DNA from: Rebecca billardiae RCC1528
Lineage: Eukaryota; Protista; Haptophyta
Reading direction: 5' to 3'
Length of the DNA: 64,000 nt
Assembly (NCBI GenBank): GCA_965240325.2
Contig: OZ251223.1
Coordinates: 496,001 to 560,000 of the forward strand
Shown here in pieces: positions 9,939 to 63,659 of the stretch. Under the pieces are notes generated by a model that saw nothing but the letters and a program-made list of their open reading frames with translations, was not told the DNA's origin and ran no database searches. Both the position numbers and the translations under genes were made by a program. Every line of letters begins with the position of its first letter. Positions within the stretch are counted from its first letter, which is position 1.

Positions 9939-11049
9939 CCAAGGGAGTCAAGGGTGCCCGCGCCCCAGTGGCGCGCTCGGCGGATGTTGGGATACACCTT
10001 TTTGCCCGCGGCCCTGCGGCGGCGGCGGCGATGGCGTGCTCCGCTGGCGGGGCGAGCGCACGGGGCACGGCGCTGCGGGCGCGGATGTGCCCGCGAAGCC
10101 GGCGCGTGCGGACGGGCTGTTGCGGGAGAGTATCGGGCGCCCTCCTGCGACGCGCGACTTGCGCCACGCCTCTTTCGCCTCGGCTCAGAGCAGCGCGCAC
10201 GCACGCGCCGCCTCAAGGCCAGCCTTGCCGCGCCGCAGCCGACCGCGCGCGCGCCGTGCGCGGCGTGGTCGGGAAGGAACGGGCGCTGCTGCCGGGCGAG
10301 ATGGCGACGTCATGGGCGCACGCCATGCCGCCCCGCGGCGCCGCGAAAGAGCACGAGAACGGATCCGCACAGCTGTTGACGAGTGCTGATTTCTTGCCGT
10401 GCCTGAAGCCAGACCTGAGCTCGAAGAAGATGATGAAAGAGCATCAGCGCGAGGAAAGCGTCGCACCCAGCACTTCTACATGACCACGCGGTGATGAACA
10501 TTCATGTAAGAGTAGCCCGCGTGCCCGTCTGGCACTGTTCTGTGTCTCAATGATCGTCCCGACAACGGTCACGACCGCGAGGCAGTGCACACCATTTGTG
10601 ACAAGTCGAAAAGGCGTGCAAACGGACCGACGACACTCTCGTCAAGGCGTGGCGGGGCGGCATGGCGTGCGCCTATGACGTCGCCATCTCGCCCGGCAGC
10701 AGCGCCCGTTCCTTCCCGACCACGCCGCGCACGGCGCGCGCGCGGTCGGCTGCGGCGCGGCAAGGCTGGCCTTGAGGCGGCGCGTGCGTGCGCGCTGCTC
10801 TGAGCCGAGGCGAAAGAGGCGTGGCGCAAGTCGCGCGGCGCAGGAGGGCGCCAGATGCTCTCCCGCAACAGCCCGTCCGCACGCGCCGGCTTCGCGGGCA
10901 CATCCGCGCCCGCAGCGCCGTGCCCCGTGCGCTCGCCCCGCCAGCGGAGCACGCCATCGCCGCCGCCGCCGCAGGGCCGCGGGCAAAAAGGTGTATCCCA
11001 ACATCCGCCGAGCGCGCCACTGGGGCGCGGGCACCCTTGACTCCCTTGG
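9939..11049. repeat. Long inverted repeat: 398-bp arms (9939-10336 and 10652-11049) with a 315-bp spacer
   Basis: The arms are reverse complements with about 4 substitutions seen by eye; this explains the near-identical N-termini of ORFs 7804-10200(-) and 10788-12920(+). Confidence 0.95.
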
Positions 11050-12920
11050 TCCGGCGCCCCAAGCCGCGAACGCGTCGACCGGTGGAAGCCGGTGCCACTG
11101 GTGGCTCCGCTGCCTCGGCTTTTACTCGGCTCGTCAACGAGCTCCGCGCACTCAAACGGGCTGCGCGCGCGCTCCTCGAGCGAACGAAGCAACCATCGCC
11201 CCCTTCGGTGACGCCGCTCGGCCGTCCGCCGCCGCGCCCGTTCCTGAAGAAGGGCACTGGCACCGCCTTGGTGGGCCGGCGGCCATCCTCGGGCTCCGTC
11301 CTCCCGCCGCGCGCGGGCGGCGCGGCCGAGCCGCTGCTGCCGAAACGACCGTCGTCGTCGTCGACCTCGCCAGCCAAGAAGCCGGGCTCACCTGACAAGC
11401 CGCCTTCGATCATCACCGTGGACGCGAGCACGTGCACGCGCGACGTCCGGCCCGCAAGCCCGTGGCCTGCCCGCTCGTTCGCCCTGCTGCTCTCTGCTCT
11501 CGCGATTGCGTTCACGGCCCTTCTCGGCGCGTTCGCCGAGTACGCGCCCGCGAGCGGCTCGAGCGGCGGCGTCGGGCGCTTCCTTACGCTGTCGCTCACG
11601 TCAGTCGTGGGCGTCGGCTTCGTGCTGGCCTCGGCGCGCCACTACTCGCTCGGCGTCGTGGCGCTCAACCTGCTCAGCGCGGCCGTCGTGGTCGTCGAGG
11701 CCGTGCTGCTGCGCGGCGCGCTGGACGCGAGCGCGCGCCCTCCTGCGGCGTCGCCGTCCAAGCCGATCGAGCTCGACATCGAGCTGCTCTCGCAGGGCGT
11801 GCTGGCCGCGACGTCGAGCACCGTCAGCCTTGGCGCGCTCGTCGGCTCCGCCTCGCCCACGCAGCTCCTCCTTCTGCTCGTGTTCGGAGCGCCCGCGCAT
11901 GTGCTGGCGCGCGCGCTCGGGTTTGAGGGGCTGTGCGCGCCGCTGGGCGCGGTGGACGCGGGTGGCAGCATGGGCGTGCACGCGCTCGGGGCGTACTACG
12001 GGCTCTCGAGCGCGTGGGTCCTGCAGCGCAGCCGCCGAGCACTCGGCGCCGAGCACTCGAAGCGCGCCGCCCCGCCCACGACCGAGCTGGTCTCGCTCCT
12101 AGGCGCGGCACTGCTGTGGGGTGTGATGCCCGCGTTTAACAGCGCGGCCGCGGGCGCGGAGCTGCGGTTCTGCGCGGTGGTGAACACGGTGCTCGCGATC
12201 GCGGGCGCGACGCTGGCGGCGTACGCGGCGCCCGTCGCGCTGGGCGGCGGCCGCCGCCTCGACCTGCGCGCCATGCCTCGGGCCACGCTCGCCGGCGCCG
12301 TCGCCATCGGCTCAGCTGCGGCGCTGGAGGTGTCGCCTGCCACCGCGTTTGCTGTCGGCGCCGGCGGCGGCGCGCTCGCGGCGGCGGGTCTGCTCGTCGT
12401 CGGACCACGGCTCGAGCGGCACTGTGGCCTGCGCGACGTGTGCGGCGTGCACTCGCTGCACGGCATGCCCGGCCTCTTCGGAGGCCTCGCGGCGGCCGGC
12501 CACCTCTGCGCCACGGGCGAGCGCGCGGCCGCGCTCGCGCAGCTGTGCGCGCTCGCGCTCGCGCTCGGCGTGGCGGTGGTCGCCGGCCTCAGCGCCGGGC
12601 TGCTCGTCTCGTGCGTCGACCGGTCCGACGACTCGGCCCTCGCCGCGCGCGCCTTCCACGACGCGGCCTTCTACTTTGGCGACACCGACGAGACGCACCC
12701 CTCGCCGCTGCGGCCGCACGCCGAGGACCCGGACGACATCGCGCTCGAGTCGGCCTCGCACATCACGTGCTCCCAGTGCAGCGCCGCGGGCAGCAGCCCC
12801 CAGCGCGGCGGCCCCGAGAGCCCCGGCGTCTGCGAAGAGCAGAGCCCCGGCGTCGGCCCTCGGACGAAGACGTGCGAGACCGTCTCCTCCGCCGCGACCT
12901 TCAAATCGGCGACGAGGTGA
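10788..12920 (+). CDS. Rhesus (Rh50)-type ammonia/CO2 channel, Amt/Mep/Rh family; true start uncertain
   Basis: Rh signatures DAGGSMGVHALGAYYGL, LLWGVMPAFNSA, ATLAGAVAIG, DVCGVHSLHGMPGLFGG; about 11-12 TM helices from about 11480. Confidence 0.9.
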   Translation: MRAALSRGERGVAQVARRRRAPDALPQQPVRTRRLRGHIRARSAVPRALAPPAEHAIAAAAAGPRAKRCIPTSAERATGARAPLTPLVRRPKPRTRRPVEAGATGGSAASAFTRLVNELRALKRAARALLERTKQPSPPSVTPLGRPPPRPFLKKGTGTALVGRRPSSGSVLPPRAGGAAEPLLPKRPSSSSTSPAKKPGSPDKPPSIITVDASTCTRDVRPASPWPARSFALLLSALAIAFTALLGAFAEYAPASGSSGGVGRFLTLSLTSVVGVGFVLASARHYSLGVVALNLLSAAVVVVEAVLLRGALDASARPPAASPSKPIELDIELLSQGVLAATSSTVSLGALVGSASPTQLLLLLVFGAPAHVLARALGFEGLCAPLGAVDAGGSMGVHALGAYYGLSSAWVLQRSRRALGAEHSKRAAPPTTELVSLLGAALLWGVMPAFNSAAAGAELRFCAVVNTVLAIAGATLAAYAAPVALGGGRRLDLRAMPRATLAGAVAIGSAAALEVSPATAFAVGAGGGALAAAGLLVVGPRLERHCGLRDVCGVHSLHGMPGLFGGLAAAGHLCATGERAAALAQLCALALALGVAVVAGLSAGLLVSCVDRSDDSALAARAFHDAAFYFGDTDETHPSPLRPHAEDPDDIALESASHITCSQCSAAGSSPQRGGPESPGVCEEQSPGVGPRTKTCETVSSAATFKSATR

Positions 12921-17571: not shown

Positions 17572-18862
17572 ATGGCCGAGTGGGCGGCCTACGTCGCACT
17601 GGCCGACGTGGGGGCGGAGGTGTGCTCGCTCTCGGCGTCGGAGGAGTGGCTCGTTGTCGGCACGGCCGTCGGCCGGCTGCAATGCTACGCGCTCAACGGC
17701 ACGGCGGGCGTCCCTGCGCCGACGCCGACGGCGGCGCGCGCCGCCTTCCAGCCGCCGGCCGGCGCGCCGGCGCGCTCGCCGCGGCTGGCGCCCGCGCTGC
17801 ACACCGAGCGGCAGCTGAAGCGGCACGGCCCGGTCGAGCAGCTCCACGCCGCTCGGCGCGAGCCCCTCGCGCTCGTGCTCGCCGGCGGCTCGCTCACCGT
17901 GCACTCGCTCCCATCGCTCGAGCCGGTCGGCGTGCTCGCGTCGATTGGCTGCCGAGGCTTTGCGGTGGATGACGGCGAGGACGGCGAGCGCGTGGCGGTG
18001 GCCGTGGACGGCGAGATCCGCTCGTACTCGCTCTCCCAGCCCGTCTCGCACACGCACTCCTTCCCCGTGCCCAGCCGCGTCGGCGCGCTCCACTGGAATG
18101 GCAGCCTGCTGTGTGCCGCCGTCGGCGACGGCGTCGAGCTGCGCGCCTCGCAGGGCGGGAGCAAGCTGGTGGACCTGCCCGGGCTGGCGGCGGCGGCGGC
18201 GGGCGCGTCGCCGAGCACGCCGGAGGACGAGCCCGCGCCCGGCGGCGCCGACTCGAGCCGCACGCCCTCCGAGCCGCGCACGCCGGAGAGGCGCCGCCGT
18301 CGGCCTCTGCTGGATGGGGGCGGCGGCGGCGGCGGCGGCGGCGCGGACGGCGCGCGGCGCGGCGGGATCGGGGCGCACGCCGAGGCGGAGGGCGCGCGCT
18401 CGCGGATGCTCGACGGCGGCGCGCGGCACACCGCGCGCGCGTACTCGCTGCCCTCCGGCGCGACCGCCGCCGCGTCGGCGGCGGCGTCTGTCGCCGCGTC
18501 CGCCGCGTCCGCCGCCGCCAAGTCCGCCCGCCTGTCTCTCGCATCGACGACGCCTTACGAGTCGCCGTCGGCGTCGTCGATCGCGTCGTCGCGCACCGCG
18601 ACGCTGCGCGCCGCGCGCGCCGCGCTCGCCGCGTGCTGCCGCGTGCCCACGCTCCCCGGCACCTTTCTCCTCGCGCCGCCGCTCGCCGACGGTCGCGCTG
18701 CACTCGTGCTAGCCGGCGGCGAGGCGGGCGCACTGTCACTGCGCGAGCTGGCGCCGCTCGACGCGCCGCCGCTCGCGCTGGCGTGCACGCTGACGCACGC
18801 CATCGCCGTGTTCGAGTCGAGCGTGTGCGCCGTGCCACTCGGCGTCGTCGTCGACGGCTGCA

Positions 18863-18896
<34 letters not shown>

Positions 18897-20451
18897 AGGC
18901 GGTGCCGCCGCCGCCGCCACCGCCGGCTTCGGCGGCGGCGGCGGCGGCGCGGCGGCGGAGCGTGGCATGGCGGCGGCCGACGGCGCGGGCGCGGGCGCGC
19001 CCCACGTGCCCTCCCATCGCGCGCACGCCGCCGCCGCCGCCGAGCGCGCGCAGCCGCCGCCGAGCGCGCCCGTGCCGCAGGCCGTCGCCGCGGGCACGTC
19101 CGCCTGGGTCAGCGTGAGTGCGCGCGCGGCCGGCCGACACGACGTTGGCTGCGGCGCGCGAGCGGGCGCGCGCGGCGCGTGCGGCGCGAGCGGGCTGGCG
19201 GCCGCGCGGCCTCTCGGGGCGGTGGCGCTGCCCCCCGCGCCCACGCCGCCGCCTCGCGCCAGCCGAGCCCGCGCGGCGGCCGAGGGCTCGGAGCCCACGC
19301 CCCGCGGCACCGGCGGCGCGCGCGGCGGCGCGGGCGGCGGCGCGGGCGGCGGCGCGGGCGGCGGCGCGGGCGCGTGGGTGGACTTGCCGACGCGGCTGTG
19401 CCGCGCAGCGCCCGCCCAGCCGGGCGGCTGGGCGGCCGCCGACGCGGGAGCGCGCGCCGGCGGCACGCCCGCCGGTGCCGTCTCCGCGGCCGACGGCGCC
19501 ACTCGCTGGCAGCCGCCGACCGCCGCCGCCGTCGCCGCCCTCGCGCGCTCCGGCAGCGAGCGGACTGGCGGCGGCGAGCCGCCTGCGGACCGGAGCGCCG
19601 AGCGCGGCGGCGGCGGCGGCGGCGGCGCGGGCGGCGGGTACGGCGGCGCGGCGGCGCGCTCGCGCGCGCCGCCCGTCGCGACGTGCACCGTCGGCGGCTG
19701 GCTGCTCGTCGCGCGCGGCGACGCGGTCGCCGTCATTCAACCCGCGCCCGCGTGCGCGCCCGCGCGCCGCGCTTACGCCGTGCTGGCGCGGCACTCGGCG
19801 ACACTTGAGCCGACTGTGGTGTGCCGCGCGCTGGGCGCGGCGCTGCTGTGCGCGCCGACGCACCCGCTCGGCGGCGTGTGCACCGCGCTGCGCGAGGCGG
19901 CGGTGCGCGCGTACGCGCAGCTCGACGGCGCCGCCGGCGCCGCCGCCGACGAGCTCGGCGGCGGCGGCGCGGCCGGCGGCGGCGCGGCCGGCGGCGGCGC
20001 GGCCGGCGGCGGCGCGGCCGGCGTCGGCGCGGCCCACGCCGACGCGGACGCGCGCGCGCGCGCGCTCGCCTCCGCCGTCGGCGTGTGCCGCGCCGTGCGG
20101 CGCGAGCTCGCGTGCGCGGTGCGCCTCGAGCTGCGCCACGCGCTGCTGCAGCAGCAGCGCGGCGGCGGCAGCCCCGCCGCGCGCGCCGCCGCGCTCGACG
20201 CCGCCACCTCCGACGCTGTGGAATCCGTTTTGTTCGGCCGCGCGCACGGGCCGTTGCTTGCGCTGTATCGCGCGGCGGACCGCGAGCTGAACGGCGCGTT
20301 CGCGGCGAACCTGGGCCGGCTGCGCGCGCTGCCGGCGGAGGCGTTCGGCGTGAGCGCCGAGGTGCTCGCCGCCGTGCCCGCCGCCGCCGCCGCGCTCGTC
20401 GCCGCGCCCAGCTGGGGCAGCCTGGCTGACGAAGGGCGCTCTGTGGCAGCG

Positions 20452-20485
<34 letters not shown>

Positions 20486-21240
20486 TGTCCGCCTCCGGGC
20501 TGTGCGGGCTCGGCGCGCTCTCGCGCGCGTCGAGCGTGCGCTCGCAGGGCGGCGCGCAGCAGCGCGCCGCGTCGCCGCCGGTGCTCTGCTCCGCGCCCGG
20601 CGTGCCGCCGCCCGTCGGCGCGACGCTGGCGGCGCCGGTGCCGAGGCTGGCATGCGGCGCGTGCGCGCCGCCGCCCGGCGCGGCGGGTCTGTGCGTGCGC
20701 TCGCCGCTCTCGCGCACGCCGTCGTGTGGCGGCGGGTGCAGCGGGTGCGGCTGCGTGCCCGCGGCGGCGGCGGCGGCCCCCGCCGCCTCGCCGCACGCGC
20801 ACGCGCGCGGGCCGGCCCGCCGGCCGCAGCCGCCCGCGCCGCCGCCGCTCGCGCGCGCGCGCACGCAGTCCCCTGCCGCCTACGCGGCTGGCGGCGGCGG
20901 CTTTGGGTGTGGCGGCGGGTGCGCCGCCGGCGCCACGCACGGGAGCTTCGTCAGCGTCGTCGCTGGCGGCGGCGGCCCTTCGCCGCGCACGCGCTCGCCC
21001 GCGTGCTTGGCTGGCGGCGGCGGCGGCGGCGGCGGCGGCGCGCGTGGCACGCCTCCGCCGAGCGCGGCCGAGGCGGCAGTGGCGGCGGCGGCCGCGGCGC
21101 TCGGCACGCTCGGCGCCGCGGCGGGCGGGAGCGGGGCGTGGCCTGCGTGCGCCGCCGGCGCAGCCCTCCCCGCCGCGTCGTACGAGCAGCTCTCGATCTC
21201 CGCCTCTTGCTCCTCGCTGCACGACTCAACCGCCAGCCTC

Positions 21241-21321
<81 letters not shown>

Positions 21322-21506
21322 ATGGCTGACTGGCGCCCCCCGCGGCTCTCGGCGGGGCGGGGCCCGCCGTCGCTCGGCTCGTGCGACTCGGCGAGCCTCA
21401 CGCTCAGCAGCACCACCGACCAGCTCGGCGCGGCCGGCGCCGACGACGCGCTTGGAGGAGGCTGGGGCTCATTCGGCACCGGCCGCGGCCGCGCGCCTCA
21501 AAAGCT

Positions 21507-21539
<33 letters not shown>

Positions 21540-24500
21540 GCGTGCGCAAGTCGTCACGCCGCTTGGGTGCTCGCTCGCGCCGATCGTGACGGCGCTCGCG
21601 CGCGCGCTCGCGCCGCTCCGCCGCGCGCGCACGCCCGAAGAGAAACTCAAGGTGAGTGCCGCGCACGCGCGCGCCGCCGCCGTGGCGCCGCCGCCGTGGC
21701 GCCGCCGCCGCGCGCGCTCGCCGCCGCGCGCGCTCGCCGCCGCCGCGCGCGAGCGGCGCGCACCCTCGCTCACAGCCGCGCCGCGCCGCCCGCTCGCGCG
21801 CGCGCAGGTGGTCGAGCGCGCGTGCGAGGCGCTCACGCGCGCCGTGCACCCGGCCGCGTCGGTTGGCGCGGATGAGCTGCTGCCGCTATGCGCCTATTCG
21901 CTCGTGCACGCGGCGCCGCGGCTGTGTACGGCCGCGGAGGGCAGCGGCGTGCGCGCGCCGTGCGACGGCGGGTGCGACGGCGGCTGCGCGCTGCTCTCGC
22001 ACCTGCGCCTCGTCGCGGACTTCATCCCGCGCTCCGCCAGTGTCAACAGGTGCCGAGCCGCGCCCGCGACCCCGCGCCCGCGACCCCGCCGCCGCCGCGT
22101 GTGCGCCGGCAACCGCCGCCGCCGCCGCCGTCCCGCCGCGTCGCGTCGGGCGCTGAGTGACGCGTGTGCGCCGCCGCCGCCGCCGCCGCGCGCCGCGCGC
22201 AGGGGCGGGTACGCGCTCACCACGCTGCAGGCGGCGGCACTCTTCATCGTCGACGCGCCGCTGCTGCGCGAGGGCGGCGGCGGCAGCGTGGGCGGCGGCG
22301 GCGGCAGCGGCGGCGGCGGCAGCGTCGGCGTAAGCAGCCGCGCATCATCGATGGCGGAGGTGGCGGCGGGCGCTCAACAGCCGGGCGGCGGAGGCGTCCT
22401 CGGCGGCGCCGCCGCGCCGCCGGCCGACGCGCGCTCCTATGCGCTGGCGAAGGCTGTGCCGCGCGCGGCGCACGGCGCGCTTGCGCTCAGCCGCGCGGCC
22501 GCGCCGCCGCCGGGCGCGGCTGGCGCGCCGCCACCGCCCCGCCCCGAGCGCTCCGGCTCGGCGGCGTCGCTCGCGGCGCGCGCGGCGGCGGCGCGCACGG
22601 TGGGCGACTGCCCGCTCGGCGTGCGGCCGCAGCGCTGCTCCGACGGCCGCGTGCTGCGGCGCGGCGACCACATCGCGCGCCTCGTCATCCGCCCGTGGTC
22701 GCGCGTGCCGCTGTGGCATCACGGGATTTATTTCGGCGGGCCGAGCGGTCGCGAGGTCGTGCATTTGGCTCACCACCACGACGGGTGCGAGCCGAGCGAG
22801 GCGGGGACGGACCCGGATGGCTGCTGCTCCGTCGCGCCCTCGTCCAGCGGCGCGGCGCTCGGCGGCGGCGCCGCCGCCGCCGAGCGGCTCGGCGGCGGGG
22901 CATGTAAGCCTACGCTCGCGGCCGCGGCGGCGGCCGCGCGCCACCGCGCCGCCGCCGCGTCCGCCGCCGCGTGCGCCGCGTCGGGCGTCGGCGGCGGCGG
23001 TGGCGCGATCCGCCCGACGTCGAGCGCGGGGCTCGTCGTGTACGCCACGCTTGCCGAGTTCGCCGACGGCGGCCGCGTCGTCCGCATCGACCACGACGCC
23101 ACCGACGGCGTGCACGCTACACTGGAGCGCTCGGCCGCGGCGGTGGGCGCGCGCGCGAACGACCGCGCGCACGTGGCATGCGAGCGCCTCGCGACGTGGT
23201 GCGCGTGCGGCCGCGCGCGCTCGGCGAAGCTCGCGGGCGCGCGCGTCGCGCTGCGCGGCACGCTGCTCGCGCCCGCGCTCGCGGGCGCGCCGCACGCGCT
23301 CAGCGCCGGCGCCGCGCCGCTGCTCGGCGCCGCGCTCGGCGGCGGCGCCGCGCTGAGCGCCCTGGTGGTGGCGGGAGCGGCACTCGCGTCGGCCGGCGGC
23401 GGGCTCGGCGGCTCGCTCGCCGTGCGCGCGGCGCTGCCGTCGGGCGCGCGCGCGCTGCCGCCGGCGGAGCGCGCGGCGCGGCGCGGCGCGGCGACCGCCG
23501 GCGCGCGCGGCGGCGCGCTCGGCGCGCTCGGCGTCGGCACGGCGGTCGCGGCCGCGGGCGCGGCCGCGACCACAACGGGCGCGGCCGCGGCCGGCGGCGG
23601 CGTCGGCGCCGCGCTCGGAGCAGGCCTCGTCGCGCTCGGCGGCTCGGTGGGCGGCGGGCTGCTCGCGGCCAGCCTGCTGCCGTGCTGGGCGGCGATCGCC
23701 GCCGGCTTCGGCTGGTACGGCGTCTCGCGCGCGCACACGCACGTGCAGCGCGCGCGCGGCCGCGCGCTGGTCGCGTGCGCGCGCGCGCGGCCGCGCGCGC
23801 TCGCGCACGCGGGCGCAGCGCACGCGCTCGCCGCGCTTGTGCGCGAGCTCGCGCTGCTTGCGATGGCGCGCGCGTCGCCGCTAGTCTGGTCGCGCGCCGA
23901 GCGCGAGGAGCTGCGCGCCGCGCTCGCGCGCGCGCTCGCGTACGGCGAGGCCTACGCCGCCGACGCCGCCGCCGGCGCGGCCGCCGACGCCGCCGCTCTC
24001 TCATCGCGAGGCTCAAGTCGGCGCTCGGCGGCGCGCGCGGCGCGCGCGGCGGTGGGCGCGGACGCGGCGGTTGCGGCGGCGGTGATGTCGCGCGGCGGCG
24101 GCGGGAGCCCGCTGCTCCCGCCGCCGGGCCAGCACTACCGCCACTGCCAGCCGCGCGCCGACGCGCCGGGCTCGTCCGCCGCCTCCGTCGCCTCGCTCGA
24201 CGGCGGCGGCGCGGGCGGCGCGGGCGGCGACGGCGCGCCGTGGCGCGTGCGCGCGCGCAAGAAGACCGCGGACATCGGCTGGGCGCTCGACATGTGGCTG
24301 AGCTGGGAGCCGGCGACGCCGCAGCTGGGGCGCGCGGCGATGCGCGGCGCGCCGGCGTCGTCGTACGACGAGCTCCGGGCGGACGTGGCCGCCGTGCTCA
24401 GCGCGTGCGCCGCGGGCTTGCTCTTCGAGGAGGGGGGCGGCGGCCATGCTGGCCTGGGCGGCGGCCATGCTGGCCTGGGCGGCGGCCATGCTGGCCTGGG

Positions 24501-29850: not shown

Positions 29851-30968
29851 ATGCTGCGCTCGCGCGCTCGAGGCCAGGGCGCTGGGGTGGTGCTCGTCTG
29901 CTCGCCCGGGGCCGACCCGTCCGATGTGCAGACGCTCCTCACCGCGGGGGTGCTCCACCAGCAGGGCGAGATCCGGCTGGCGGGCGTGATTGCGTCCGGC
30001 GGCGCTCGTCACGCCCAGGTCGCGCGGTGCGTGCTCGACCGTCTGGGGGCGCGTGATGTACCGGTGGGTGTCGGCGCGAAGGGCGACGGCCCGCCGCCGC
30101 AGCCCCAGCCGCACGAGTTCCGCCTGCCCGGCGTCGACGCGGTCGACGTGCTCACGCTCCGCCACGGCGGCCGGCTGCTCGCGTCGCTGCTCGAGGCCGC
30201 GCCGGAGCGCGGGCTGACGATCGTGTGCATCACGGCGATGCGCGACCTCGCGGACGCGATCAGCGCGTCGCCCGAGCTCTTCCGCGCCAAGGTCGCCGAG
30301 CTCGCCGTGCAGGCCGCCGTCGAGCGCGACGCGGCCAAGGGCGCGTGGGTCCCTGACTCGTCCGCCAACAACACGCTCGACGTCGCGGCCGCGACGGCGG
30401 TGTACGACTTCTGCCTCGAGTCGCGCGTGCCGCTCGCGCTGATGAGCCGCGAGGCGGTGCCGCTGCTGCCCATGCAGCTCGCCGCCTCCTTCGCCGCGCG
30501 CACGCGCGACCCGCTGCTCGCGTACGTCGCCGAGGCGCAGCCGGCGTCGCTGCGCGCGCTCTGGCAGCGGCTGTGCGCGGGCGAGCTGCCCGCGCGCTGC
30601 ACCAAGGCGTGGTTCGTCAAGACCTTCTGCGGGAGCGCGGCGTCGAAGCTGGGCGAGGACGGCGTCGAGGCGCTCGGCGCCGACGACGACATCGGCGCGC
30701 GGCTCGCCGGCCTCAAGCCGTACGGCGTTCTCACGCTCATGTCTGTGCTGCCGCGCACGCGCAACCTCTTCCCGCCGTCTGAGCCGGTCGTCGACCGCGC
30801 GCACCGCTTCTACGTGCGGCCGAAGCACGCGGTGGACGACGCGCACGTGCTCAAGCTGATGCGCGACACCTACCACGGCGCCGTCCTCGCCACCGCCGAG
30901 GCGCTCGCGCCGCCGCGCAAGTCGATGCTCGGCGCGGTCGGCGCGTTGCTCGGTGGGCTCGTCGGCGC

Positions 30969-31003
<35 letters not shown>

Positions 31004-33384
31004 GTGGTGGCGGCAGCAGCAGCCACAGCGGCCGCGCGCGCGCCATGCAGCGCCAAGGCCTCACCTCGCGCGCGCTCCGGCAGACGCACCAGCTCTCCGC
31101 CGAGTCCAACCTCGGCGAGGTCTCCTCCAAGCGCACCGTCTCGTCGGGCTCGTCGGAGTCGATCTCGCTCGCCGACGAGCCGACGGCGGAGAAGCCTCAG
31201 CCGCAGCAGCAGCAGCAGCTCATGCAGCAGCAGCAGGGCGGCCCGGCGGCGGCGCAGCTGGGCGAGCAGGGCGCCGGCCTCGTCGGCACGCTCGAGACCG
31301 CCCTCGCCGAGGCCTCCCTCCGCCAGTGGCAGGTCTCCATCCCGCTCTTCTCCATCGGCCTCGCCGTGATTGCAACCTCGGCGCACCAGCAGCTGCACAC
31401 CAACGTGTCCCCCGAGTGGGCGACCGACGCCAACGTGACAATCCGCTCGGACATGTTCGCGCTGCTGTACCTGATGGGGCTCTCGCTGCTGATGCTCGCG
31501 CTCCAGCCCACGCGCACCTTCCTCGGCCTCGTCCGCGTCGCCGCCGCCGTCATCGCCGCCGTGTACACCATGGGCCTGCTCATGGCTGTCGGCGGCTTTG
31601 GCGCCAAGTTCCTGCGCACCTATGCGCTCACGCGCTCGCTCTCGCAGTCCCTGCAGTGGGAGGCGTTCGTCGTGGTCTCGATGCTGGGCGGCTCGCTCGC
31701 GTTCGTGGGCCGCGCGCTGCGCAAGCACTGGCGCTCCGTCCACGACCTCACCTTCGCCCTCTTCCTCGTCGTCGGCGTCGCGTCGGGCTCTGAGGTGCTC
31801 GTCGTCATCATCCGGCGCACGCTCCTCGGCTGGACCTCGGGCTCGCGCGGCCTGCCGCTCGCCGCGACGACGCTCGCGCGCACGGTGCTCAAGGGCGCGC
31901 TGTCGGGGCTGCTGCTCTGGCCGCGCTTCCGCGCGCACGTCCACGTCTTCTTCGGCCGCTGCGTCCGCGCCGTGAGCAGCACGCGCCTCGCCGAGCTCGC
32001 GCCGCTCGCACCGCTGATCGGCTTTGGGACTCTGCACCAGGCCGTCCCTGAGAAGCTTGTCGCCGGCGCGGCCGCGGTGTTCGCGCCGGTCGCGCTGAGC
32101 GAGGAGGCGCTGAAGGAGCTCACGGTGGCGTGGGAGGAGGGCAAGACGAGCGGCGCCGCGCCCGAGCCCGCCGCCGCCGCCGAGGCCAAGCCGCTCCGCA
32201 CCGTGCGCGAGAACAGCTCGGCCGACGGCGCCGGCGCGGCCTACGTTGTGCACGCGGCCGCCGACTCCGCCGCCGCCAAGGTCGACGCGCTCCGCGCGTG
32301 GGCGTCGAAGCAGTCGGCGCCGCCGACGGTGTGGATCGAGCCGCTCTGCGCCGACCTCTCGCTCTTCCCGCACGAGCAGGTCCACCACGAGCTCGTCACG
32401 CTCGCGCTCTGCCCCAAGCTGCTCCTGCTCGCCGGGCCGGCGCTGCCTGACTCGCTGCAGTGCGTCTCGCAGCTGCACGCGTGGACGTGTCTCGGCCGCT
32501 CGCTCGACGACGTGGAGGTGGTGCTCGCGGTGCCGGAGGGCGACGAGGCGGGCGAGCAGGCGACGCTCGCGGCCTTCGACACCTTCGCCGTCATGTACGC
32601 CTCGGCCACGCGCTCCGAGTACGAGCAGGCCATCTCCCACTCCGTCGAGCTCGCGACCGCCTCCGCCTACAACGAGGCGGTGCACTCGGTCGTGCCTCTC
32701 ATCCGCGCGGCCATCAACAAGCGGCGCGCGGGCAGCGAGACGCTCTCGCGCTCGCCGTCGGTCGCCGACTCGCTGTGCGCGTCATCCGGCGCGCCGTCGG
32801 CCAGCCCCTCCGACCTCGACGACCTCGACGAGGACATCGCCGAGATCGAGGCGGCGGAGGTTCGCGCGGCGGCGGGCGCGGCCGCCGAGGCGCGCGCCGC
32901 GGCCGCGGCCGTGGCGACCGCCGAGCCGGCGCCGCTGCTGCATCTGCACATCGGCCGCGCGCACTCGCACTCCGACGAGTCGCCCTCGGTCGACGACACG
33001 GTCGGCTCGTTCGATGAGGAGGACGAGCCCATCTTCGTCGCGTACGCGAAGCGCGCCGACGTGGCCGCCGCGATGAGCGCCGCGTTCAAGCTGCCCTACC
33101 AGCTGCCGGCGTCGGGGCCGTTCCGCCCGTCCGTGCGTGCCGCCGCCGACGCGCTCGTCGAAGCGCTGGCCGGCGCGTCGGGCGCGAGCGACGAGCACGC
33201 GCCGTTCGACCTCTCGATGCTCGCCTCGGGCGGCTTCGCCCCGCCGCCGCGTCGCCGCGAGTACGCCACGCCCACGAGCAGCGGCGCCCTCCTCGCCCCC
33301 GACGTTCTCTCCACGTGGGCCGAGGACGCGCGGCGCTTGCACTCGGCCGCCGCGGCCGCGCCCCTCCCCGTGCCGTGCGCCTAG
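29851..33384 (+). CDS. XopQ/HopQ1-like nucleoside-hydrolase-fold domain, ~6 TM helices, degenerate TIR-like domain
   Basis: NH fold about 29887-30895 (CSPGADPSD, VARCVLDRLGARDVPVGVG, VPDSSANNTLDVAAA, LPARCTKAWFVKTFC, PYGVLTL); TM block about 31327-31925; TIR-like about 32236-32715 (AYVVH..D, VWIEPLC, CPKLLLLAGP..DSLQCVSQL); intronless. Confidence 0.75.
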
Positions 33385-57840: not shown

Positions 57841-58578
57841 TCATTGGCTCTGATGAATGTCACCATCAGCGTTGATCGCTCCACTTCTTCCCCGCAACCA
57901 TTGCCGAGGAGCCCCACCAGATTCGTCCGTACTGCTGCCTTCCGGCTGCTCGCCGAGGCCTTGCGCCGTGGGCGCGTCTCGAAGCAGGAGAACGACGCGC
58001 CTGCCCTTGTGCACGCGCACATCTCCAAAGGATGGCTCCGCTGGCACGGCGTGCGTCCATTCGTAGCGAGCCTCGCCGCTGAGGACGTAGACAGAACGGG
58101 CTGGGACGAGTATGTCCACGCCGTCCGATGCCCGCGTGACGTGGCGAAGGTGCACCACGCAGTCGGAGAGGAGATTGAGTGCGGCGATGGTCGAGCCGCT
58201 GTGGTCCACATGATCAACGTGCGCGTTGATGAAGCCGCGTGGATCCGAGTCAAGGTCGAGGATGTGGGGCGACAGCAGCTCTACGGGCGTGTCACCGAAG
58301 ACGGCCGTCGTCATCCGCGCAAGCACTCGCCGATTCCCGTCGTCAAACCAATCTCGCGCGCGTTCGAGCTCCCTGTAGCCCCCGATCACGCCATCAAAGT
58401 GCCGTTGCTGGTAGCGGCGACGGCGAAGCAGGGGATCGAGCTGGGCCACAAGGGCTGATTCTTCCTCGGGTGTGATAAAGTCGCATTCGAGGCGCAGCGG
58501 CGGTGGTGCGCATCCTGTCGAGGCCCGAACGAGGTGCCGTGGCGCGCTGCCAACGAGCCGCGCCGCGGCGGCGCGCAT
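57841..58578 (-). CDS. ALKBH7: AlkB homolog 7-like Fe(II)/2OG dioxygenase, probably mitochondrial
   Basis: RRRRYQQRHFDGVIGGYRE, HILDL, HVD (HxD), SVYVLSGEARYEWTHAV, GRRVVLLLRD; Arg-rich presequence. Confidence 0.85.
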   Translation of the reverse strand: MRAAAARLVGSAPRHLVRASTGCAPPPLRLECDFITPEEESALVAQLDPLLRRRRYQQRHFDGVIGGYRELERARDWFDDGNRRVLARMTTAVFGDTPVELLSPHILDLDSDPRGFINAHVDHVDHSGSTIAALNLLSDCVVHLRHVTRASDGVDILVPARSVYVLSGEARYEWTHAVPAEPSFGDVRVHKGRRVVLLLRDAPTAQGLGEQPEGSSTDESGGAPRQWLRGRSGAINADGDIHQSQ

Positions 58579-58783
58579 TGCTCGACGCTGCGGCACGCCC
58601 CGCCCCGTGACGCCCGCCCGACGAGTGGCCGAGTGGCCGTTAGATGGTTTGGTCGGCGCATTTCGGCGTGATTTGATTCATTTGAGGCGTCGTCTGAATA
58701 TAATAATGCATCTGCTGCCGAATTTGGCATCAAGAATGGTGCCCATCGGCATCGTCACGGGCCCAGTGACAATCATGTCGTCA

Positions 58784-61700
58784 TCAGCCGCCCGTGGACC
58801 CCGTCGCGGACGTGTTGCGGACTGGCGCTCCGCTCGCTCGCGCCGAGCGCTCGCCGACGCTCGGCGACGACGGCACGGCCGCAGCGGCGGCGGAGAGCCC
58901 GACGCTGTTTGCACGTTGCATTGGCGGCGAGGGCGCGCCCGCGTACATCCGGTACGCAGAGCCGCGCTTCCCGTCCGACTTGCGGCTCTTGCGCGCGACG
59001 CGCATGAAGCCGCTCGGCCGCGCGTGCCGGCCCGACATCTTGCCCTCGTGCTCGCGCGCCGGCGTGAGCGCCTCCTCCAGGATTTCGTCAAACCGCATCG
59101 CCTCGCGCGCGGTGAGACCGGTCGCGTGCGCGGCGGCGACGGGCAGCGCGTCGCCCGTCAACTGCCGGTTGAGGAACGTGAAGCGAGATCGGATCTCCGA
59201 GGAGGACATCTTGCGGCCCATCTCGCCCAGCTTGCGAGAGCCTGTCGTCTTGGGGCCGCCCTCAAGTCCGGGCGCCTTCGCACTCCCGTCCGAGTCGGCC
59301 GTGCCGCCACCCTCGTCACCTGCGCCGCCCGCGCCGCCCGCGCCGCCGTCCTCCATTTTCTCAGTGGTCAGACGGATCGAGTCGAGAAGCCTTCGGGAGG
59401 AGCCCAGCCGGCCGGCCGCTCCGGCGCGCATGCTGCGCGCGGTGAGGGCCGCGGCCGCCGCGGTCGTCGGCGCGGTCGTCGCGCCCGCCGCGTCGTCGCC
59501 CGCCGCGCCCGCCTCCTCCTCCGCGCCCCCTTCGGCGCCTGCCGGCCGCAGCCAGCTCGGCAGCGCGTCCGTCAGCTCCAGCTCGCCGAGGCCTGGCACG
59601 CTTAGCGTGTGCCGGCGTGACGTGAGCCGCGCGTCCGCCGCGGTGAACTCGGATGCGTCCAGCGTCGCCGCCTTCGCCACCATCGTCGCGACGAAGGGGC
59701 GCAGGCCGCTCGAGCTCGCGGCGCGCTGCCCGACCTGTCGGTGGATGGTGCCCTTCCGAGCGACCTGCCGCGTGGCCGCGTAGAAGTGACCAGAGGTGCG
59801 CGAGCTCGCGGCCAGGAGCATCGCGACGCCGGGAAGCGGTATCGCGGTCGCGCCCGCCCACACCGCCGCGCTCGGGTCGGGGTCGGCGTTCCCGCCGGTG
59901 TGCACCTGCGCGAGCGCGGCCGCGCCAAGGCCGTACTCCTCGGCGAACCATTCAGCGTCAAGCTCCGCAGGCCAGCTCGCCGCGGCGCCGCGCGCCGGCT
60001 TTGCAATGCGCGCGCGCTGCGAGCGCGCACTCACGGCGCGCACGGCGGCGCGGACGTGCTCGCGAACTGCCCAGCCGGTGCCGCCGCCGACGGCGGCGAG
60101 CTGGTCGTACAGCGCGGAGGGCAGCGAGGCGCGCGACGCCTCGGAGCGCGGCACGAGCCTCAGCGGCACGCCGAGCGCCTCGCACTGCGCCGCAAGAATC
60201 ACCGCCGCCTCGCCCGCGTGCGGCAAGCACGCCTCGGCGTTAGGCAGGATGCGGAGATCGCGGCGCGCGTTGACGGCCGTCGCGACCGCCGTGCCTGAGC
60301 TCAGCGAGTTGCGCGTCGAGGGCACGGCCGTCGGCGCGATGGCGGAGGACGAGACGCCCAGCGAGCCGGCCATGCTGTAGCCGTCATCGCCCGCGTCGTC
60401 GTCGGTCGAGTCGTCGTCGTCGCCGTCGCCGCCCTGGCTCGGCCGCCCGCCAGCGCGCTCGTGCTTCGGGCCGCCCGCGCCGCCGCCGCCCTCGTCCGCG
60501 TCTGACGGCTGCATCGACGCGGGTACGTTGGGGTTGAGGAGTCCGCTTGCGTCGGGCGAGATGTCGCCGAGCGCCACCACGCACTCGGCGTGCTCACGGA
60601 AGAGCAGCGGCCGCTGCCGCGCGAGCTGGGCCAGCAGCAGCGGGCACGTGGCGCACACGAGCCGAGCGCCCGAGGGCAGCTTGGCAAACACGGACGCAAG
60701 GCGCTCGAGCGCGCCATTCGCGCCGTTGTCCGCCTCATCAAAGCAGAGGACAGACGTCTGCGCCGTCAGCCCCAGCTGGTCGCACAGCTCGGCGGCGGAC
60801 GGGCGCATCGGCGTGCGGCGCCGCGTCGCCTCCACCCCGTCGGCGCCGAGCACGGTCGCGGTCTTGGGCGACTTGGGCGCGCCCTGCTTTCGGAAGGACG
60901 ACTCGGTGGGCGGCGGCGTGGGCGGCGGCGTCGCCGCGCGGCCAGAGAGCATACTCGACTTTGTTGGCGCGGCGTAGCTCGGCGTTCCCGACGCGGACGT
61001 CGGCCGGCTCCCCGTCGGTCGAGCCGACGACCGGCCCTGCTGCGGCGGCGTCAGCGGCGTGCCAGCCGCGTGCCGCTGCGGCGGGGGCGAGCTGCCGCCG
61101 CGCCCCGCCGCCGCCGCCGCCGCCGCGGGGCGCTCCTCCTCCACAGGGTGCGGCTCGGCGCGCGTGAAGATGAGGACGGCGGCGCACTCGAGTGCGTTGA
61201 ACTCGATCAGCGCGCGCAGCAGCAGCAGCACCGGCGCGCTCGCCACCGTCTGCGCGTCGTGCACCGCCAGCACGATCGTCTGCCGCTCGCCGCTGCGCAC
61301 GTGGACGCCGATCGCGCGCGCGATCGCCTGAAACACGAAGAGTGAAAGGTCCTTGCCAAAGCCGTCGCGCACGCCGGTGCGCTCCGCAGAGACGCCGATG
61401 ACCTCGTGAGTCACCTGTTGGCCGCCGCCGGCCCCGCCGCCCGTCGCGCGCTCCGCCTCCTCCGTCGGCAGCGAGACGGGCGCGGCGACCGACGACGAGG
61501 GCGCCGGGGAGATCGGAGGCGAGATCGGCGCCGGCACCGCCGGGATCGTCAGCTTGAGCGGGTCGAAGAAGACCGTTGCGAGCGTCGGGCAGCACGCGAC
61601 GAGAGCAAGCACTGTGCGAGCGCGCGCCGAGGGCGGCGCGGAGGCACGCGGCACGCCGCGCTCAGCCGCGCGGCGGGCGCGAAGGTGCGCGCGGCGGGCG

Positions 61701-63659
61701 GCGCGGCGCTTCGGCAAAGCGGCGCGGCCCAAGGCGCGGCGCGCCGCGCGCGCGCGCCGCATGCCGCGCGCGCATCGGCGCGCGCGCATCGGCGCGCCGC
61801 GCATCGGCGCGCCGCGCATCGGCGCGCGCGCATCCGCATCGGCGCTCACCGTCGTACATGTTGAAGGAGACGATCAGGTCCCAGATCGGGTCCTCCGAGC
61901 CGCGGTCCGACGCGCGCCCCTTGCAGAACGTGCTCGAGAACCACTCGCGGTCGCACCGCGCCGGCAGCCCCTCGCGCCCCGCGTCGCCGTCGGGCGCGCA
62001 CGCGCGGCGCCACAGCCGCTCAATCGAATCTCGCTGAACCTTCCGGAGACGCCAGCCGATCGGCGAACCGGACTGGGCGAGGTAGTCGTCTGCGCGCGCG
62101 AGGGGTCGCGGCGGCGTGGGCCGAGCGCGTGCCGGGCGGGGCGGGTGAGCGCCGGAGCAAGACTGCGCTCGGGCGGCGAGGCGCCTCGCGCCGGCGCGGC
62201 GCCCGCGAGGCCGCGCCGCGCGTCGAGCGAGCGCGCGCGCAGCGCGGCAGCATGGGGCGCGCGCGACGCACAGATCTCACGCCGGACGGGCGCCGCGTAC
62301 GCCGCGTAGCGCGTGACGACGGTGAGCGGGATGGCGCTGCGCTGGCACGCCTCGTACAGGTACGACGCGGCGCGCATGTCGAATGCCTGCGAGCCGAGTT
62401 GTCGCGCAGAGCGCGCGCGGACGCGCCGCGCGGCCGTGCGCACCGCGCGTGCAGTGCGCGCGCACAGCTCAGCACCGCCGGGGATCGGGCGGCGCCCGAG
62501 GGCGAGGCAGCAGAGAGCACGCCTGCGCGCGGGCGCGCGCGGGCGCGGGCGCGCGCGGGCGCGGGCGCGCGGGCGAGGCGAGGCGACGCACGTTGTTGTG
62601 CGCCGTGTCCGGCACCAGCATCGGCGGGTCGTGCGGGTCGTACGTGGTGGGACTGTCACGGCCGCTCGCGCTCCCGCCCGGCAGCGGCGAGAGGGGCGCC
62701 GGCGAGCCGGATGCGGCGCACGGCGTGACGGTGGCGCTCTCGCGGCCGGCGGAGTTGCGCGGGTTGTGCTCGGAGGGGTGGGCGGAGGGGCGGTCGGAGG
62801 TCCGACGCGAGCTGTCCGCCATCGACGTCTGCATCACCCCCGCGCCGAACGCCGAGGTGGGCAGCGGGATTCGCCCGCGCGTCGGCGTGGACGCCGGCGT
62901 GATCGCAGGCGTCAGCTTCCCCAGCACCTCCTCGCACGCGCTGACCGACTCGAGCGAGACGCCGCCCATCACCACGACGCGCTTGATCCGGTCGATGCAG
63001 AGCACCCCGTTGTCCCGCATGAAGAGCGCCGCGTCCTTGAACGACGAGATGCACAGCAGCGTGATCGACTTGGGCGGCGCGTCGCTCAGCGTGCGGTGCA
63101 GCAGCGCGCGGCCCGGCTCGATGTCGTGCGCGCGCTCCGAGTCGGCGGGCGGCAGGTACGACGCGGTTTCGGAGAAGTGGTCCTTCGCCTTCGGCGCGCC
63201 GCCGTCCGTGCCCGAGCCCACGGGCACGCCCTGCAAGCGCAGCAGGTCGAGCGTGCCGCGCGCGAGCCGCGCGCGCGAGCCGGACGGCTGCAGGTTCGCA
63301 ATCACAGCCTTGACCTCGATGAGCTGCTCGTCGACGAGGAAGCGTGCCATGAGGAGGGCCATCTCGTCGTCGAGGTCCTCGCCAACGTCCGTGATGATCA
63401 CCACGGCCTCGGCCGGCGGGCGCTCCTCCTCCTGCTCCTCGAGCTCGCGCGTGAGCTCGTGGAAGCGCAGGTGGTACGCGCAGAGCGCGCACACGAGCAG
63501 GAGCACGACGCACGCGAGCGCGGTGGCCGCGGCGAACCAGCCGACGCCAGAGATGGGGTCGTCCTCGTCGGTGTCGTCATCATCGTCATCCAACTGCGCC
63601 CACGCGGTGCTCGCGAAGGCGAGCAGCGCGAGGGCGTTAGCTCGTGTGGCGCCCAGCAT
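58784..63659 (-). CDS. Single-pass membrane protein with tandem XopQ/HopQ1-like nucleoside-hydrolase-fold domains (first intact, second degenerate)
   Basis: Signal MLGATRANALALLAFASTAWA, acidic mini-ectodomain, TM, IITDVGEDLDD, RARLARGTLD, VVMGG, VPDTAHNNAFD, LPARCDREWFSSTFC, FNMYDVLAL; introns 62387-62591, 62090-62271, 61612-61849; second degenerate copy about 59670-61280. Confidence 0.8.

Follow-up and report, generated by a model that had tools for sequence, protein, structure and literature searches.

A predicted membrane-anchored XopQ/HopQ1-like hydrolase fused to a degenerate copy of its own fold in the haptophyte Rebecca billardiae

Introduction

A gene in the haptophyte Rebecca billardiae RCC1528 raises the question of why a relative of XopQ, an enzyme used by plant pathogens, should be held in a membrane and joined to what looks like a broken version of itself. 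The gene lies on the minus strand of contig OZ251223.1 (GenBank assembly GCA_965240325.2), within a stretch of 64,000 nucleotides (positions 496,001 to 560,000 of the forward strand), which we call the window and whose numbering is used below. It runs from an ATG at 63659 to a TGA at 58784 in four exons, which total 4251 nt or ~1416 codons. A preliminary description, made from the letters of the sequence, had called the product a receptor-like membrane protein with one intact and one dead XopQ-like domain, and all the strings quoted there are found, in place, in the minus-strand translation. We consider it probable that the gene encodes a single-pass membrane protein, in which a cytosolic, competent hydrolase of the HopQ1-like (HLP) clade is fused to an old, dead duplicate of the same fold.

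Results and discussion

The first domain is an intact XopQ/HopQ1-type domain

Each exon was searched separately, and reading across the junctions was confined to the two codons split by introns (TAC and GTG). Exon 1 alone matched the nucleoside-hydrolase (NH) family PF01156 with an E-value of 1e-7 and 32.4 bits, under the cut-off of 34.2 because this exon holds only half of the domain; its best sequence match in the PDB was XopQ (7jlu_B, E 1.7e-7). The Asp box TDVGEDLDD aligns without gaps with TDPNKDPDD of XopQ, which displays the non-canonical Ca2+ motif D-x4-D-x-DD, not DxDxxxDD. A profile built from an alignment of 12 homologues of the intact domain (A1) matched three XopQ structures with E 3e-50 and 174 bits over positions 18-306, including the XopQ-specific C-terminal region, whereas against the classical IU-NH the match covered only the N-terminal half (E 1e-7, ~34 bits).

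Every invariant column of A1 is kept in the encoded protein (D-G-D-L-D-D-E-M, RARL-RGT, GTDGG, KDAA, MGG, PDTAHNN-FD, R-AYA, IYD, IGWRL and NMYD), and the motifs of domain 1 follow one another in the order TDVGEDLDD, VVMGG, PDTAHNN|AFD, NMYD. The last of them, at the junction of exons 3 and 4, provides the second catalytic Asp ('YD', the class of D399 in XopQ), the family pattern 'fnlyD' being aligned with NLYD of XopQ. Both motifs that hold D120 and D399 of XopQ are intact; the double substitution D120N D399N is the catalytically dead mutant of that enzyme (bioRxiv 10.64898/2026.06.15.732069). Because of the match to the XopQ profile and the retention of all invariant motifs, domain 1 is placed in the HLP clade and looks catalytically competent. 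The preliminary description had named the same features (Asp box, VVMGG, NN.D and YD); all are present, and XopQ is the nearest structure. The intact algal domains also share three Cys residues in the pattern LWxRACAP...RCDxxWFxxTFC (61851-62087 in the gene), at a place where XopQ has none and from which they have been lost in the gene's own second domain; they could form a disulfide or a metal site.

The second domain retains the fold and has lost the catalytic residues

The region downstream of domain 1, termed psiNH here, escapes simple searches: Pfam gave no match for exon 4, a word-based protein search with this exon returned zero matches (probably swamped by low-complexity words), and BLASTP of domain 1 against domain 2 revealed nothing significant, so that profile methods were needed. 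With residues 100-640 of exon 4 as a single sequence, hhalign aligned the C-terminal half to A1 with Prob 96.6 and E 6e-10, and the N-terminal half in the correct register but weakly (E 0.044). With alignments of eight paralogous psiNH domains and the orthologue from Pavlovales sp. CCMP2436 (A4, A5), the corresponding values were Prob 99.5 and E 3.9e-22 for the C-terminal half, and Prob 88 and E 2.9e-6 for the N-terminal half, where the alignment starts at the strand of the Asp box and reaches that of VVMGG. In the reverse direction, a hidden Markov model of the intact NH domains matched the second domains of the paralogues at E-values from 2e-20 to 3e-3, and the psiNH profile cross-matched the intact NH domains of the genome, as well as protein P0003 from a library of 1.84 billion representative proteins.

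An AlphaFold2 model of psiNH, built on A4, an alignment without intact NH domains, reached a pLDDT of 75-95 in blocks and <50 in the inserts. All four significant matches of this model in a Foldseek search of the PDB were XopQ. VIA-align superimposed it on XopQ (4p5f_B) with Z 19.8 and a root mean square deviation of 3.5 Å over 262 residues (8-514 of the model, both halves), while other NHs reached Z 13-15 and unrelated Rossmann-type folds at most 8.5. In the hhalign register the Asp box DPGQDLDD corresponds to HDAQTVAS (VHDAQTVAS in the gene), the ribose motif PDTAHNNEFD to PNAEACLPHA and the final NMYD to PLPG, and the catalytic-motif losses are common to all 10 psiNH sequences. These comparisons show that domain 2 has the NH fold, from which the Ca2+- and ribose-binding residues have been lost. 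The second degenerate copy of the preliminary description is thus a real NH fold, by both hhalign and the structural match. The parallel between the two repeats, which had been drawn by eye, is borne out as a common fold by the profiles, but not by plain BLASTP. An AlphaFold/Foldseek comparison had been proposed there, with a region of some other fold as the contrary outcome; XopQ came out as the best match.

The degenerate domain is maintained by selection

In comparison with the closest paralogue, the ratio of nonsynonymous to synonymous substitutions (dN/dS) is 0.30, 0.37 and 0.66 in three psiNH blocks, 0.76 in insert 2a and 1.0 in insert 2b. The blocks are conserved in the CCMP2436 orthologue (L001), which does not keep the inserts, and in the eight paralogues, and the residues FRE, QC..LG, GG.LG, VW and G..H are specific to psiNH and invariant in the 10 sequences. 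This shows that the structured psiNH blocks are under purifying selection, maintained rather than decaying. A tree of the C-terminal half places the ten psiNH domains in one group (100/99) and the intact domains in another (99/98), and the gene pairs with one and the same paralogue inside both groups, so that the two domains have been copied together as a unit. The tree is unrooted and compatible with a single old duplication, without proving it.

The pair is a cassette that recurs behind receptor ectodomains

In the 72-Mb, 41-contig assembly, the XopQ-like profile produced at least 105 exon-level matches at ~70 loci. The profile of the psiNH region identified 11 further loci, each directly downstream of an intact NH domain. 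The NH-psiNH cassette is thus present at no fewer than 12 loci in the genome, as well as in the Pavlovales orthologue and in transcripts of other algae, and its layout is uninterrupted in eight paralogous open frames and in the transcript-derived protein P0068. In five paralogues (L018 and L026, both on C16; L021 on C15; L022 on C12; L024 on C1) a Venus-flytrap domain of the ANF_receptor/Peripla_BP_6 type lies upstream of a transmembrane (TM) helix and the cassette. L020 (C27) carries a LamG and cadherin-like upstream part instead, and L003 and L019 a multi-pass block. In the 1.84-billion library the psiNH profile found 49 matches, the top ones with PF01156 N-terminal to the psiNH match; P0020 combines LamG, cadherin-like, NH and psiNH parts, and P0068, an MMETSP transcript, has an OpuAC ectodomain with the cassette. 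These architectures show that receptor ectodomains are repeatedly followed by the NH-psiNH pair as a cassette; the gene under study is the family member in which the ectodomain is almost missing. A contact prediction between the two domains of paralogue L003, with alignments unused, scored 0.00 and is evidence neither way.

Transcripts of the diatom Ditylum brightwellii (P0024/P0070) encode a TM helix, an intact NH and a second, partly degenerate NH (QLRWDNLSD, AAQNHRLD, NLYS). Locus L002 of R. billardiae (C22:1050500-1058500, minus strand) has the same plan with TQVRWDNTTDD, VILMGG and PDMEAQNNFLD in the second domain, which resembles the second domains of the diatom more than psiNH of the gene. 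The encoded protein has its nearest named relatives in Pavlovales sp. CCMP2436. The orthologue L001 in that species (MU631354.1) contains an assembly gap of Ns (11040-11817) inside domain 1, and because of this gap the public model P0001 stops short, and the sequence downstream carries an annotation of its own, as hypothetical protein P0021.

Literature searches revealed no description of an architecture that combines an intact with a dead NH domain. Algal HopQ1-like proteins as such are already known (PMC6019455); what is new is the dead second domain and the presence of the pair across receptor genes.

Gene structure and membrane anchor

The exon structure is supported by comparison with homologues. 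The three introns that the preliminary description had postulated are all of the GT-AG type (start GTG(C/A)G, end CAG), with a GC content of 0.84-0.86 and no codon periodicity, while the third-position GC of the exons, read in the frame proposed here, is 0.85-1.0. Splicing restores colinearity with the intron-free homologues P0015, P0016 and P0068 at all junctions (HNN|AFD, REI-Y-DYL, NMYD-V-LAL), the third of which, NMYD-V-LALVAC, corresponds to LYDVVALMAA of P0068. The choice between two possible donors of intron 2 was settled by the closest paralogue in the same genome, which lacks this intron and reads PVRREIYDHLAQSG in one frame (REIYDHL uninterrupted). The DNA 5' of the ATG is AT-rich and non-coding-like. 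Two introns contain GC-rich tandem repeats: ~7 copies of a 15-nt unit in intron 3 (61733-61834) and ~5 copies of a 10-nt unit in intron 1 (62525-62575).

At the N-terminus (Table 1), the signal peptide and its AWA|Q site are a heuristic call, the layout of which is matched in the closest paralogue. Residues 35-69 are the sole run of 19-residue windows with a Kyte-Doolittle hydropathy of at least 1.6 in the N-terminal exon. The closest paralogue has an equal N-terminal plan, but its stub is non-acidic and nine residues long (RVGLPFQET), and the model of the CCMP2436 orthologue begins at the TM helix; the anchor therefore appears to be conserved, and the acidic stub not. In the paralogues the TM helix precedes the NH domain by 10-40 residues. 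A type I single-pass topology is a possible reading of one hydropathy-based TM helix and the putative AWA|Q site, with the orientation taken from the paralogues: since these have a signal peptide and a Venus-flytrap or LamG ectodomain, and ectodomain and cassette flank one TM helix on opposite sides, the NH domains, and with them the catalytic side, are most likely cytosolic. The short acidic ectodomain and single TM helix of the preliminary description are both found. No ligand-binding ectodomain is present among the 16 residues between the predicted cleavage site and the TM helix, so the protein would be a tethered enzyme and not a ligand-gated one; the term "receptor-like" asks too much of so short an ectodomain and suits the gene family, not the gene itself.

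Table 1. Features of the gene and its predicted product (positions in the window)
Feature	Position	Strand	Remarks
Exons 1-4	63659-62592; 62386-62272; 62089-61850; 61611-58784	-	
Start codon and signal-peptide-like segment	63597..63659	-	MLGATRANALALLAFASTAWA; aa 1-21, hydrophobic core, AXA site AWA|Q
Acidic stub, whole predicted ectodomain	63549..63596	-	QLDDDDDDTDEDDPIS; 16 residues, aa 22-37
Single TM helix	63474..63548	-	aa ~38-62; by hydropathy
Domain 1, intact XopQ/HopQ1-like NH fold	61295..63407	-	spans exons 1-4
Asp box TDVGEDLDD	63366..63392	-	HopQ1-type spacing D-x4-D-x-DD
Insert 1	62625..62954	-	~110 aa, Ser/Thr/Pro-rich loop, between VVMGG and PDTAHNN
Intron 1	62387..62591	-	205 nt, GTGCGT...GCAG, phase 0; junction HNN|AFD, same in homologues
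Intron 2	62090..62271	-	182 nt, phase 1; split codon TAC = Y
Intron 3	61612..61849	-	238 nt, phase 1; split codon GTG = V
Insert 1b	61412..61549	-	~46 aa, Pro/Ser/Ala-rich loop, near C-terminal end of domain 1
Domain 2, dead NH-fold copy (psiNH)	59690..61294	-	exon 4 residues ~106-640
Insert 2a	60806..61159	-	~118 aa, Ser/Thr/Pro/Ala-rich loop, after psiNH strand 2; pLDDT <50
Insert 2b	60254..60553	-	~100 aa, Gly/Asp/Ser-rich loop, between psiNH halves; pLDDT <50
C-terminal tail	58784..59689	-	~300 aa, mostly low complexity
Conserved tail motif GLGELELTDALP	59549-59593	-	common to paralogue and orthologue
Conserved tail motifs MSSSEIRSRFTFL and REAMRFDEILEEAL	within 58787-59200	-	common to paralogue and orthologue
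Stop codon TGA	58784-58786	-	

Inserts and C-terminal tail

Four inserts interrupt the two domains, as the preliminary description had noted for both. All are rich in Ser/Thr/Pro/Ala/Gly and poorly conserved, and 2a and 2b are disordered in the AlphaFold2 model. Insert 1 is clearly coding, judging by its third-position GC of 0.93-0.97, and its loop length differs between homologues; a motif RRxSDxP, common to the gene and its closest paralogue, is a possible phosphorylation site. Insert 1b is missing from the closest paralogue, and the mRNA-derived P0068 carries a longer one at the equivalent place, while insert 2b cannot be aligned across the paralogues. The inserts thus look coding, disordered and nearly neutral. 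Pfam gave no match for the C-terminal tail.

Comparison with known systems

An algal HLP clade with the non-canonical Ca2+ motif, from heterokonts and haptophytes (Emiliania, Aureococcus and Thalassiosira among them), was reported in 2018 (PMC6019455), in a paper that analysed the NH domain alone and in which the words "transmembrane" and "tandem" are absent; "tandem" is likewise absent from a review of NHs (PMC8910321). Domain 1 fits this clade by sequence, whereas that paper gives no account of a membrane anchor, a dead second domain or receptor ectodomains.

XopQ was long held to be inactive; it is inactive on nucleosides, monomeric, and wraps around ADP-ribose (ADPR) in an enlarged site (PMC8910321). 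It has since been found to hydrolyse the TIR product 2'cADPR at its ribose-ribose O-glycosidic bond, in a highly efficient and specific reaction (bioRxiv 10.64898/2026.06.15.732069); this activity is known from bacterial XopQ only. The encoded protein shares with XopQ/HopQ1 (PDB 4KL0, 4P5F, 7JLU chain B) the HopQ1-type Asp box, the final YD and the extra C-terminal region, and its dead domain 2 also matches XopQ best. It differs in being a eukaryotic nuclear gene with introns, and in having a predicted signal peptide and TM helix, long disordered loops within the fold and a dead twin. A type III secretion N-terminus is not present, the protein beginning with the signal peptide-like segment and the TM helix. 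The 14-3-3 site of HopQ1 lies in the bacterial N-terminal region (PMC10944878), which has no counterpart in the gene, and a scan of all exons for 14-3-3 mode-1/mode-2 motifs (including R[SFYW].[ST].P) yielded none, only two loose R..[ST].P matches being found. The 14-3-3 regulation evoked in the preliminary description is therefore not borne out.

Classical NHs (IU-NH 1MAS, RihA/B/C, IAG-NH) are soluble homo-oligomers that act on nucleosides (PMC8910321). They have in common with the protein the fold, PF01156 and, for psiNH, Z-scores of 13-15, but only their N-terminal half aligns (E ~1e-7) and the spacing of their Asp box is different. A similar arrangement of unrelated parts is known from receptor guanylyl cyclases, in which an ANF-receptor ectodomain is followed by a TM helix, a pseudokinase and the cyclase. 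The sister genes of the family likewise consist of an ANF_receptor ectodomain, one TM helix, an enzyme and a pseudoenzyme, a design in which a sensor at the surface is linked to a cytosolic enzyme that handles nucleotides and to a dead regulatory domain. The enzymes, however, come from unrelated families, the dead domain here comes after the live one, and the gene itself is without an ectodomain. Plant NSH3-type proteins may have two NH domains, but the texts searched held no statement to this effect. In Arabidopsis, NSH1 and NSH2 activate each other in a heterocomplex (PMC8910321), which is a case of one NH-fold protein modulating another, although these two are separate, active, classical NHs and not an HLP fused to a dead copy.

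Possible functions and alternative explanations

The anatomy of the protein is established by the comparisons above; its substrate and regulation are what we infer. In analogy to the action of XopQ on 2'cADPR, domain 1 would be a Ca2+-dependent glycosidase for a large ADP-ribose-type ribosyl substrate rather than for plain nucleosides, a reading suggested by two traits that link the algal proteins to XopQ, namely the unusual Asp box and the additional C-terminal region. psiNH could be a non-catalytic partner of domain 1, serving as a scaffold, a regulator or a docking surface, and the disordered Ser/Thr/Pro loops may be regulatory and possibly phosphorylated. Several points weigh against this interpretation. 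The substrate of domain 1 is a guess by analogy, and both the signal peptide and the TM helix were called from hydropathy and from the layout of the family. The match of the N-terminal half of psiNH is moderate, and the mean pLDDT of its model is 59, a value explained by the disorder of half of the chain. psiNH of the gene retains an LYD motif and one nearby Asp, so that residual ligand binding may persist. Splicing was deduced from comparison with homologues and from codon periodicity; the periodicity is weak in insert 2a, and the CCMP2436 orthologue has an intron at this position, so part of the insert could be an unrecognised intron, although the search of the insert revealed no GT..AG pair that is in frame and fits the local donor consensus.

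That the gene model as a whole is an artefact, made of two separate genes or of a pseudogene that happens to be open in GC-rich DNA, is nevertheless highly improbable: long chance open reading frames are common at 70-76% GC, but exon 4 encodes the final strands and helix of domain 1 before it continues without a stop into psiNH, the third-position GC periodicity of 0.85-1.0 extends along the frame, the layout is continuous in the eight paralogous open frames and in P0068, and dN/dS is below 1 in the psiNH blocks. Conservation of these blocks in paralogues, orthologue and other algae also makes it unlikely that the protein is an ordinary membrane-anchored hydrolase of nucleoside salvage with a functionless, decaying duplicate. 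PF01156 enzymes do mostly serve in salvage and the inserts evolve neutrally; however, the salvage NHs are much more distant from the family than is XopQ, an enzyme without activity on nucleosides, and the cassette is attached to receptor ectodomains. The selection that preserves the NH fold could be given another meaning, namely that psiNH is a non-hydrolysing domain that binds a ribosyl-nucleotide and gates the neighbouring active site, combining sensor and eraser in one chain. The psiNH-specific invariant residues of the 10 sequences, the wrapping of XopQ around ADPR and the mutual activation of NSH1 and NSH2 (PMC8910321) would be in line with this idea, which we regard as doubtful, given that all the NH residues that hold Ca2+ and the ribose hydroxyls have been replaced.

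The preliminary description had also suggested, as a possibility, that the gene is the signal-degrading arm of the system at 29851-33384, where an NH-6TM-TIR-like gene lies. XopQ does degrade a TIR product, and two family members 25 kb apart are more than expected, since ~70 loci in 72 Mb correspond to ~0.06 further members per 64-kb window. However, the NH domains of the two genes are of different subfamilies (E 4e-63 vs 7e-39 with the same profile), the genes are not a recent tandem pair, the NH domain at 29851-33384 has a degenerate Asp box (CSPGADPSD), and neither shared regulation nor conserved synteny was seen, the called neighbours of the CCMP2436 orthologue being a kinase, an FtsJ protein or proteins without a Pfam match. 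With proximity as the only argument for it, subfamilies that differ and ~70 or more such loci in the genome, we rejected the functional link, which we think very unlikely. The membrane-tethered enzyme-pseudoenzyme pair of that description is thus retained as regards the tether, the combination of an intact with a dead fold and, by the layout of the paralogues, the most likely cytosolic location; the signal-degrading partnership is not.

Surroundings of the gene in the window

The hydrolase domain of the NH-multi-TM gene at 29851-33384 (plus strand) may itself be inactive, judging from its sequence: it matches PF01156 weakly (E 2.5e-5), with VCSPGADPSD in place of the Asp box. Directly downstream of the gene under study, a minus-strand gene at 57841-58596, which starts ~190 nt from the stop codon, matches PF13532 (2OG-Fe(II) oxygenase, AlkB-type) with E 4.7e-6, below the cut-off. 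The GC content of the window ranges from 63 to 84%; a 6-kb segment (18001-24000) has GC 0.83-0.84, compared with 0.63-0.76 elsewhere, and a negative AT skew.

Implications

The haptophyte XopQ-like enzyme is predicted to be fixed to a membrane, with a conserved dead twin as its permanent partner, a pair to which sister genes add receptor ectodomains, and it would represent a new enzyme-pseudoenzyme pair for the NH superfamily. At its most speculative, the cassette could be the cytosolic output module of a large, undescribed class of algal surface receptors (with Venus-flytrap, LamG/cadherin or OpuAC ectodomains) that controls a TIR-type, ADP-ribose-derived messenger, with psiNH sensing or docking the messenger and the gene in the window as a constitutive, ectodomain-less member; we give this scheme a small chance of being correct. 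If it is true, the enzyme family to which XopQ of the plant pathogens belongs may have come from algae; a 2026 preprint recently reported that XopQ/HopQ1 destroys 2'cADPR, a TIR immune signal of plants. The gene gives a concrete picture, open to testing, in which algae turn over a ribosyl-nucleotide signal of their own with a receptor-coupled enzyme, and if domain 1 cleaves 2'cADPR or a relative of it, the chemistry of TIR-type signalling would reach into a major lineage of the phytoplankton.

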